DNA of 39,834 bases from Hyphochytrium catenoides (Eukaryota; Protista; Hyphochytriomycota). Shown here piece after piece: positions 1-2,332 of the stretch. Below the pieces are notes generated by a model. The model was not told the origin of the DNA and ran no database searches. It saw nothing but the letters and a program-made list of their open reading frames with translations. Made by a program: the position numbers and the translations under genes. The stretch lies in NCBI GenBank assembly GCA_900088475.1, contig FLMG01003623.1, forward strand, positions 1 through 39,834, in the 5' to 3' direction. Numbering within the stretch: the stretch's first letter is position 1; each line of letters starts with the position of its first letter.

Positions 1-2332
1 AAGGATCCAAGGATGGATCTTATGCAGGTGAAGTCTCTATTCCCCTTACCATTCGTTCCTTGAACAATTAGCTTCAGCCATTTCTTCATACTGTCTTGCA
101 AACTTTGATCTCGAGTCCAGCTCTGTAATAAATAGTGCACAAGGGGGGAATCGATGTCGTCTACGGCAAGCAGCGAAGTTAGAGTCATATCCTACGACCA
201 AACATGATGAGATGGTCCGACATCCAACCTGGAGGCGCTGGGAAGAAAGACTCGTCAAGAACCCATTCGCCATACTTCCGCCGCTGAGCCAAGCTGTCAG
301 CGCCATCTGGGAGTTGGCTGCTGAAAAAATCTAACTGCTCCGTCAGCCGTCGAATCTCTTCTTGTGCGTCCCGAAGACACTCCTGAAGCTCCCCGATCCC
401 GGGCTCAGAAGCATCTTCACTTTTCTGAGAAAGGTCGCTGGAAGTACCAACGGCCAGGCTGACTTGAACTCAGCATCTGAAAGAACTGAGACGCAAGAAG
501 AGGCTAACCACCTACCGTTCTGTCTTGACTCTTGCTAGTTCATCTCTGAGCTGTGAGTTTTCCTCCCGAAGTGTCTGTACCTCACCCTCTAGAAGTTCAT
601 GCTGAAGGGAAGGGGCTTTGGCAGCCTGTTCACCACGCTCTGAAGGCGCAACGACAGACGTCGGCCACCGCCGTGCGGGTCCTGGATTTAAGGACGTGAG
701 TTTGCAGCTGTAAAGAGGGTCCACAGACCCCTAGAATAGGGTAGCTGCATGGTATAGTATTTTCTTTACACCTTGGCCTCTATAGATACTGCCTCGATCC
801 AAACTAGAGAGCACGGGCACACTCCCTCCGACTTCAGCCTTTTCGCTATCCACCTGTGATAACAAGTGCTTAAGCGACTGAGTCCATCGCGCAATGAAAC
901 TTTTCGCCTTACATTACCTCGAAAACCCAGTTCGAAGCACTGCTGAGTCTGGTCATCGAGGACATGCGCATATTTTCTTCGCCATACACATGCCTGGAAC
1001 CCGCAATTTTCTAGAAAATAGTATGGCAAATGGAAGAAACAGGCGAGACACCAAGGGTAGCGATGCCTGTGAGGTAAGTGCGATTTCCCTGCTCTTGCTG
1101 TGACACACCAACCTTGTACGTTTTGACCATTCCTCGTAAGCTCTCTATAACTGCTGCACTCTCCGCTTTTTCGGTCTGCGTGAAACGAAGCTGCCCTTTC
1201 AGAGCTTCGACTTCTTTTTTCAGCATTGTGGTCTCCTCCTGCAGCTCCTGCGCCTTTTGAGTGGTACTCTTGAGCTGGTCTTTCAGGCTTGTTAGGGATG
1301 ACTCCCCTTTCGCGGTTGAGCTAAGTGATGTGCGCCGGAGAGCCTGATCAGGAGTAAGGCTTGTCAGTCCTGATGCTGGTCTAGATATATCTCAGGACCT
1401 ATGAGGATGCTCATACCTGTTCTGGTGAGCGAATGGCTCCATTCTGACTCTCTAAGGCAATTGCTCTCTTGTTTGCCTGGAGGTTCTAAGAGCTCAGCTC
1501 AGCTCATCAAGGGTCCTCGAAGACCGAAATCGTACCTCTTCGAGCATAGCGGCTTTATTCTCTAGGTATATCAGCCTCCGCTCCCGCTCTTTCAATAACT
1601 CCTGCAGTTTGGTGACATCACCTTTCGCCCCCTGCATGTCCGCCCGCAGCCGGTCCAACTCAAGAGCTTTTATCTGGGTGTCTTGCTGCAGGCTAATCAG
1701 CTCTTCGTTCTGTGTCCAGTCAAAGGAGAAAAATGGCCCTTAGAGGCATGGTCCTGTCAACAATTCTGGCAAGAGGACAGATACCTTTATCTGCAGGTCA
1801 TGCTGAAGACGGTCAAGTTCCAGGGCATCCTGGCGCCGGAACTTGTCCGCTTGATCCTTCTCTTTGCGGAGTATGCTGCATTGAGCTTTGAGGTCTTCGA
1901 CGGACTTCAACAGGGTCGCGTGCTGAGCAGCCATTGAGCTTGCATCTTCTTGCTGCTGTGACAGCTCTAAGGCTAAGGCTTCTTGATGACTCCTTTCCTT
2001 GAGTCCTTCCGGAGTTATAGCGATTGCTGCTAGCTGATCCTTTAGTTTCCTGTTCTCCTCCAGTAGGGCCATTCCCGCTCTAGCCGCCGTCTCAAGCTCT
2101 GGAGCAAAAAATGTTAGAGTAGTAAAGCTACGCGCCGGAGCTACTTACGTTCTCGTAAAGAAGCATTCTCAGCGTAGATGTCTACATCTTCCATGGAGTC
2201 TCGGATACTCTCCTGAAGGCAATCGATGTTAGCGCTTCTACTTTACGGAAGCGTAAATTACACACGATTCACCTGTCCCCTCGAGAAGGAACTTCCGACC
2301 CTCCTTAACGGGATCGGACCATCGTCAGCCAT
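1..2332 (-). CDS. Long coiled-coil protein with CC1-box (AAxxG) motif, candidate BICD/TRAK/HAP1/Spindly-like dynein adaptor; multi-exon, 3' end outside the window
   Basis: Spliced reading across GT-AG introns: MADDGPIPLRRVGSSFSRGQ|ESIRDSMEDVDIYAENASLRE-Q-LETAARAGMALLEENRKLKDQL...LQIK|NEELISLQQDTQIKALELDRL...|...LKKEVEALKGQLRF...|...APSLQHELLEGEVQTLREENSQLRDEL...|...GELQECLRDAQEEIRRLTEQL. Heptad-rich E/Q/K/L/R composition. Start at 2332 is the first in-frame ATG after an upstream stop; 2194 is an alternative. Confidence 0.7.

Follow-up and report, generated by a model that had tools for sequence, protein, structure and literature searches.

Nearly all that is known about the switching of cytoplasmic dynein by cargo adaptors comes from work on animals and fungi. 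In the published layout, an adaptor has an N-terminal site for the dynein light intermediate chain (LIC), a first coiled coil (CC1) averaging 260 residues, a flexible linker and, where a helix begins, a Spindly motif (PMC5379953; 10.64898/2026.04.25.720804). An alanine pair in the N-terminal site is critical, as LIC1 binding is lost when the pair is changed to valine, whether in BICD2 (A43V/A44V) or in Spindly (A23V/A24V) (PMC5379953). On the other side of the contact, the adaptor-binding helix 1 of human LIC1 has the motif FFxxLL. The Spindly motif is exceptionally conserved in Spindly itself, where S256 and F258 are needed for function (PMC5379953), and its current consensus is JxxE-phi (10.64898/2026.04.25.720804). 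Here, we describe a gene of the hyphochytrid Hyphochytrium catenoides as a candidate for such an adaptor and compare it with these systems. It lies in the first 39,834 bases of contig C1799 (positions 1-39834, hereafter the window). Genome scans covered the 61-Mb assembly of 4,759 contigs, and in searches and folds each exon was handled separately rather than as part of a joined spliced protein.

The gene may encode a cargo adaptor of the CC1-box type for cytoplasmic dynein-1, a dimeric coiled-coil protein that is restricted to its lineage and so far comes only from Hyphochytrium and one relative; this is the most likely of the readings, and we regard it as evenly poised between right and wrong. 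It is a credible but unproven candidate for the first CC1-box-type adaptor outside animals, fungi and their kin. A literature search returned no paper joining "activating adaptor", "dynein" and "oomycete", and no description of a stramenopile CC1-box adaptor.

A conserved block near the N-terminus

An exhaustive HMMER search of 1.84 billion cluster representatives (E<=0.001), made without length restriction and with exon 2 of the candidate gene as its sole query, returned one protein, P0001, of 163 residues (44% identity, E 1.2e-11). This singleton comes from the Logan assembly of run SRR29757257, and its contig, L003 (3,078 bp), holds an intron-containing orthologue of the candidate gene. The latter has ten exons in the window, all on the minus strand and spanning 2194 to 50, of which the first two bear on the N-terminal block:

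2194-2149, minus strand: exon 1, with its ATG at 2194-2192; it codes for MEDVDIYAENASLRE and supplies base 1 of the Gln16 codon; GTAAGT donor
2148-2099, minus strand: intron 1, 50 nt, GT..AG, phase 1, ending in CAG; position and phase are kept in L003, where it measures 75 nt
2098-1785, minus strand: exon 2, 104 whole codons, the first part of CC1; 44-45% identity to L003
2096-2031, minus strand: CC1-box-like block LETAARAGMALLEENRKLKDQL, with AARAG at 2087-2073 (model residues 20-24)

Is AARAG translated? The unspliced frame is blocked by an in-frame TAA at 2147-2145, ahead of the open reading frame (ORF) that starts at MALLEEN, and thus intron 1 has to be removed to bring AARAG into frame with the start codon. 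After its removal the N-terminus reads ...REQLETAARAGMALLEENRKLK, the junction of exons 1 and 2 being ...LREQLETAARAGMALLEENRKLK. A preliminary description of this DNA had proposed such a spliced N-terminus with an exon starting at about 2098, and exon 2 begins exactly there, after the 50-nt intron; its remark that the ORF track starts at MALLEEN and misses the AAxxG also holds, since the mechanical ORF at 1740-2072 begins in this way. Upstream of the ATG of exon 1, an in-frame stop can be read from the sequence at 2245-2243. After this stop, and 18 nt upstream of the ATG, lies an acceptor-like site, ccttcag/GAG (2213-2215), so that an intron in the 5' untranslated region or an upstream exon is possible.

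The block itself is identical in 18 of its 22 residues between Hyphochytrium and L003, with 9 codons identical, 9 changed only synonymously and 4 replaced. For LExAARAG, which occupies the eight codons before the in-exon Met, the same three counts are 2, 5 and 1. The synonymous excess points to purifying selection on the protein and consequently to a stretch that is coding in both species; by this codon comparison AARAG is translated in both, which was one of the points that the preliminary description had named as able to refute its proposal. Seven blocks of the protein reach 8/12 identity to L003, and this one, the only one in exon 2, is the best-conserved in the N-terminal half. The extended pattern AAxxG[LMIV]xx[LIVM]E has a single match in the six-frame translation of the window.

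Is the block a CC1 box? A two-sequence profile of 44 positions, compared with 177,635 distinct PDB sequences (E<=10), gave one match, 6PSE_A (E 0.052), which is the BICD2 CC1-box fragment crystallised with LIC1. Profile positions 3-32 lie on BICD2 44-73, and the AA pair of the block falls on A43/A44 of BICD2 in this alignment. When the 30- and 44-residue blocks of both species were scanned alone against 24,736 Pfam models, HAP1_N was the top or only family, always at profile positions 80-104 (E 0.0095-0.034), the two species being near-identical here and hence not two independent tests. TRAK1 has its QxxH at 163-166 (10.64898/2026.04.25.720804). Reckoned from this site and from the start of the HAP1_N domain in TRAK1, positions 80-104 would cover the CC1 box of TRAK/HAP1.

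Two other matches have been rejected as coiled-coil noise: one of exon 8 to HAP1_N (E 0.0019, profile 154-191), which is not collinear with the N-terminal match and is not repeated in exon 8 of L003, and Rab11-FIP3-like matches of exons 5 and 8, which sit among dozens of unrelated coiled-coil families. The CC1-block profile also has a weak second match in the genome (E 0.09), in a stop-free frame of 4,861 residues, presumably a giant gene (L012, G000:C1850:16648-19731).

Layout of the predicted protein

The remaining features of the gene model are as follows:

1709-1536, minus strand: exon 3, coiled coil; heptad score above all 300 shuffles
1476-1417, minus strand: exon 4, 20 codons; with the start of exon 5 the likely break in CC1 (Gly/Pro/Ser rich); little conserved in L003
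1343-1113, minus strand: exon 5, 77 codons (exactly 77 in L003), the last part of CC1; ends in the conserved AVIESLRGMVKTYK (1154-1113)
1010-918, minus strand: exon 6, 31 codons (31 also in L003); conserved start KIAGSRHVYGEEN (1010-972), then low-complexity linker
853-772, minus strand: exon 7, Pro/Gly/Ser-rich linker, little conserved; the least certain boundaries of the model; phase-1 donor kept in L003
681-516, minus strand: exon 8, first half disordered, then the helix opening the second coiled coil (CC2)
610-578, minus strand: Spindly-like site S-L-Q-H-E-L-L-E-G-E-V, model residues 358-368, with the overlapping LxxE-phi matches LQHEL and LEGEV
437-229, minus strand: exon 9, CC2; conserved ELQECLRDAQEEIRRLTEQLDF (391-326) and conserved GEWVLDESFFPAPP (271-230)
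160-50, minus strand: exon 10, 36 whole codons, DIDSPLVHYLLQSWTRDQSLQDSMKKWLKLIVQGTN; 53% identity to L003, with equal length and phases
49-1, minus strand: first part of intron 10, with a GTAAGG donor; contig C1799 begins within it

Nine introns of 50-102 nt each, all GT..AG, separate the ten exons, which join into an open frame of 495 residues that lacks a C-terminus, the gene being cut by the contig start. The first exon of L003 is likewise short, with its own ATG (MENQALQQ), and ends in the same phase as exon 1 of Hyphochytrium; a phase-1 intron stands directly before LEKAARAGMALLEENKQLKD; exons 5, 6 and 10 are equal in length in the two species (77, 31 and 36 whole codons); and the phases agree at the other junctions compared. 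This agreement in phases and exon lengths validates the exon model, down to the weak GTTGGA donor at intron 9. Contig L003 stops just past exon 10, so that the C-terminus of the orthologue also lies beyond its contig. At L003:2400-2420, a one-base frame shift occurs in an A-rich run (AAAGAAAGA), with ...KEENARLKE in one frame and RDLKKDLL... in the next; it is either an error of a low-coverage Logan contig or a real difference.

CC1 is predicted to run from about residue 8 to 275 (about 255 residues, mostly helical) in exons 2, 3 and 5, with a probable break near residues 190-215. Few if any of 300 shuffles reach the heptad scores of exons 3, 5 and 9; exons 2 and 8 are much less clear, with the observed value reached in 37/300 and 25/300 shuffles, respectively. 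For exon 2, AlphaFold2 (AF2) gives helices at 2-26 and 29-103 with a confidence score (pLDDT) of 94 and a kink at Thr-Pro, and AARAG (residues 20-24) is within a confident helix. About 80 residues of linker follow CC1; in exons 6-7, Pro, Gly, Ser and Thr are abundant, heptad scores are low and conservation is slight. In the AF2 model of exon 8, residues 1-23 have a pLDDT of about 54 and are followed by a helix at 25-53 with about 97, which begins at the Leu of SLQHEL. The succession of coil, disordered break and new coil outlined in the preliminary description is thus borne out by heptad scores and by the AF2 models of exons 2 and 8. Its APSLQHELLE, given at about 590-615, is found at 587-616, and the distance between the two motifs, estimated there at roughly 350 residues, comes to 338 when measured from AA (residues 20-21) to S-L-Q-H-E-L (358-363), the linker included.

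In L003, the Spindly-like site reads S-M-Q-Y-E-L-L-Q-A-E-V. JxxE-phi is fitted in both species by the second match alone, LEGEV and LQAEV (window 578-592), of which LQAEV resembles LAAEI of HOOK3. Neither LQHEL nor LEGEV fits the older L-phi-x-E-phi.

Three further blocks are conserved between the two species: (V/L)IESLRGMVxTYK-KIAGxRHVxGE at the end of CC1, ELQECLxDAQxEIRRLTxQLDF in CC2, and GEWVxDxSxxPAPP-DDIxSPLxxxLLxSWTxD...WLxxIVxGT at the start of a putative C-terminal domain. All three are without a match in Pfam or PDB. Exon 10 looks like the beginning of this domain, which would have no known family: exons 9-10 match no Pfam family, the exon 10 profile finds no PDB fold, and exon 9 has no relative in the word search or the Atlas.

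An outline of how such a protein would work can be drawn, each step by analogy with the described adaptors. The N-terminal block AARAGMALLEEN (residues 20-31) would form a hydrophobic cleft on the coiled coil that takes helix 1 of the LIC. CC1 would lie along the Arp1 filament of dynactin, between dynein and dynactin, and the conserved block at its end (IESLRGMVxTYK-KIAGxRHVxGE) would perhaps contact the pointed end. Past the flexible linker, the helix starting with SLQHELLEGEV would dock on p25, and CC2 together with the putative C-terminal domain (GEWVxDxSxxPAPPDDIxSPLxxxLLxSWT...) would bind cargo.

Partner genes and competing readings

Three partners of such an adaptor have genes in the same genome. 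For the LIC, two collinear exons on contig C392 score above the DLIC cut-off, and their best PDB matches are LIC2 of dynein-1 and not the dynein-2 chain. Dynamitin is matched by three collinear exons at C4095, one above the Pfam cut-off alone and a second together with its neighbours, and p62 by an exon at C414 with a Cys-rich zinc-binding N-terminus. Judged by these three genes, the genome does not lack dynein-1 and dynactin, a lack that would have counted against the preliminary description. In the LIC gene (L002, G000:C392:4985-8104, minus strand), an exon after the G domain, at about 846-920, reads EFDLKPEITVDDEQAFLDKLAEDGG. In the part past the G domain, ...VDDEQAFLDKLAEDGG, the stretch AFLDKLA (F-L-x-x-L-A) fits FFxxLL only partly; this exon, a lead found by eye, may be the counterpart of LIC helix 1. 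A further LIC exon (L002 2292-2633) has no PDB or Pfam match.

The dynein adaptor proposed in the preliminary description is supported in part: it is favoured by the conserved AARAG, the BICD2 register, the HAP1_N match, the layout and the partner genes, and is weakened by sub-threshold matches, by the absence of QxxH/Y and by a Leu-to-Met change at the Spindly-like site of L003. The points that weigh against it are gathered here, together with the alternatives.

As to the partners, phmmer against PDB gave no detection for the AFLDKLA candidate, and no exon-wise match was obtained for p150 (PF12455) or for the N-terminus of the dynein-1 intermediate chain (Dynein_IC2, PF11540), a result that we do not read as absence. 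As to the gene, intron 10 runs off the contig start, so that the C-terminus is not on contig C1799 and the cargo end is missing. On the RNA side, the sole public run with part of the locus (X1, of a type guessed as RNA) provides one 269-nt contig inside exon 2 that crosses no junction. This contig (window 1793-2060) shows three differences from the window, among them 1965 C>T, which is synonymous, and 1932 C>A, which changes Met to Ile; allelic variation in a diploid or another strain could account for them.

The family has two known members, and therefore its conservation rests on a single comparison. Further relatives were found neither by word search (exon 2, exon 2 profile and exon 9 profile) nor in the Atlas (exon 9), P0001 remaining the only one. 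The word search reaches proteins of 0.55-1.75x the query length, and full-length intron-poor relatives, for example of oomycetes, could escape queries made with C-terminal exons. Neither the N-terminal nor the C-terminal block has a paralogue in the genome (the exon 10 profile included). The preliminary description had left its adaptor as "lineage-specific or ancient"; lineage-specific is the better reading, and an ancient origin is not supported because one relative only was found.

The database matches are likewise open to objection, as every similarity to known adaptor families is below threshold. HAP1_N (PF04849) scores 13.5-15.6 bits, at profile positions 80-104 or 80-113 only, below the gathering score of 33.9, and the genome-wide HAP1_N scan found no locus above the cut-off. 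BicD (PF09730, cut-off 27.9 bits) matches no exon, its sole match in the genome being unrelated (16.5 bits). Exon-wise scans, which have low sensitivity in an intron-rich genome, found no canonical BICD or TRAK gene above the cut-off at other loci. The numerical margin is also small: in a control, the 36-position profile of exon 10 gave a chance PDB match to an unrelated terpene synthase at E 0.2, so that the weight of the evidence lies in the families matched and in the register rather than in the E-values.

The motifs, too, are common. The six-frame translation of the window has 27 matches to bare AAxxG, and JxxE-phi occurs five times in the Hyphochytrium protein model (5-8 times per orthologue); hence neither is significant by itself, and JxxE-phi is diagnostic through its position alone. 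Conservation of both motifs in orthologues had been put forward as a test of the proposal: AARAG is identical in L003, and SLxxEL reads SMQYEL there, the Leu of SLQHEL being replaced by Met.

These results bear on the main alternative, which we consider possible, if doubtful, namely that the protein is a coiled-coil scaffold or tether specific to its lineage (at the centrosome, the flagellar root or the Golgi, for example) without a part in dynein activation, in which AARAGMALLEEN is kept for dimer nucleation or for another partner and resembles a CC1 box by chance or convergence. It would fit the sub-threshold matches, the chance PDB matches given at similar E-values by short profiles of the same protein, the lack of an HBS1 motif and the unspecific Spindly consensus. 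The coiled-coil exons match dozens of unrelated coiled-coil Pfam families at E 0.001-0.1, and since the locus was picked for this very resemblance, the matches are not independent of the choice. It explains less well why, among all the PDB sequences and Pfam models compared, the only or top matches are two CC1-box families, in register on the AA pair, and why the block is among the best-conserved stretches and sits no more than 25 residues from the N-terminus, a position like that in Spindly and BICD2. The length of CC1, the linker and the helix onset at the LxxE-phi motif also fit adaptors.

A different objection arises from the heavy-chain site. In known adaptors this site, the CC2 box, is a QxxH/Y about 33 residues after AA together with an acidic patch; no QxxH/Y is present in CC1 of either species. 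BICDR1 has a Gln 33 residues after the second Ala of the AA pair; in the candidate Gln54 is at +33, without His or Tyr at +36, and is Lys in L003, and the nearest conserved feature is QxQ(E/N)(D/E) at +42. FIP3, NIN and HOOK3 also depart from QxxH/Y, and the main site of HOOK3 is without the Tyr827 contact (10.64898/2026.04.25.720804); thus the absence weakens the adaptor case without excluding the function. Moreover, the spacing of 338 residues exceeds that of Spindly, BICDR1 and BICD2 (about 230-290).

How, then, would a protein with a true CC1 box but no recognisable heavy-chain site act? It might bind the LIC without activating processivity, as a recruiter, an anchor or a TRAK-like two-motor adaptor working mainly with kinesin, GEWVxD(D/E)S being a possible contact with motor or cargo; we think this unlikely. 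It would accord with the unusually long, little-conserved linker ahead of a weakly conserved Spindly-like site and with the best Pfam likeness, which is to HAP1_N, the family of TRAK, itself also a binder of kinesin-1. It is opposed by the proven activators FIP3 and NIN, which also lack a canonical QxxH/Y (10.64898/2026.04.25.720804), and by a CC1 long enough to span dynactin; no evidence of a kinesin contact was seen.

If the candidate is indeed a dynein-1 adaptor that binds LIC and dynactin, the rule of an AAxxG box, a CC1 ruler and an LxxE-phi motif would hold far outside Obazoa, and would be simple enough either to evolve repeatedly or to persist after every other sequence similarity has gone. 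The cell biology of oomycetes and hyphochytrids would also gain a first handle on dynein cargo. If no binding occurs, the locus cautions that strong conservation of a CC1-like block can have another cause.

Comparison with known adaptors

As all family matches are sub-threshold, sequence comparison does not detectably place the candidate in any of the families BicD, HAP1/TRAK and Spindly. It shares features with each of them.

Like Spindly, it has its AA pair near residue 20 (A20/A21, against A23/A24 in Spindly) and a succession of CC1 box, coiled coil and S-L-x-x-E-phi motif at a helix start (PMC5379953). It differs in having Gln (S-L-Q-H-E-L / S-M-Q-Y-E-L) in place of the functional Phe, and in a spacing from AA to motif of 338 residues against 233. 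The C-terminus of Spindly binds RZZ and has a CAAX box in many species, a region that lies beyond both contigs in the candidate. An origin of Spindly in Obazoa and its absence from stramenopiles have been inferred, and the stramenopile/alveolate lineage is reported to have RZZ orthologues but no SPINDLY orthologue (PMC10630089). The Hyphochytrium genome has a marginal Zwilch-like exon (L014, G000:C3751:2490-5651; ORF 1444-1815, minus strand; 24.4 bits against a cut-off of 25), which agrees with the reports of RZZ in stramenopiles. The candidate might be a stramenopile counterpart of Spindly, a kinetochore adaptor acting with RZZ that arose independently or diverged beyond recognition and kept only the CC1 box and LxxE-phi; nothing in the data ties the protein to the kinetochore, and we hold this to be very improbable.

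From BICDR1 the candidate differs in the CC2 box, which BICDR1 has 33 residues past the AA pair (Q150/H153 plus E172); at this distance the candidate has Gln54, with neither His nor Tyr at +36. TRAK1/2 and HAP1 are approached through HAP1_N, which heads the Pfam matches of the CC1 block in Hyphochytrium and in L003; only about 25/307 HAP1_N profile positions are matched, with scores far below the cut-off, and no Milton-type C-terminal region is seen in the available part of the candidate.

BICD2 is the source of the sole PDB match of the block. The Hyphochytrium protein is without a BicD Pfam match and without QxH/QxxH, and shows no sign of a CC3-type cargo domain, its C-terminal GEWV...PAPPDDIxSPL...SWT being unlike anything catalogued. 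Yet in the alignment of its N-terminal block to the CC1 box of BICD2, QAAEYGLAVLEEKHQLK stands against kAARAGMALLEENkkLK with AA on A43/A44, and both proteins have a long CC1, a flexible linker and a Spindly or Spindly-like motif at the start of CC2, that of BICD2 being at 336-340 (PMC5379953).

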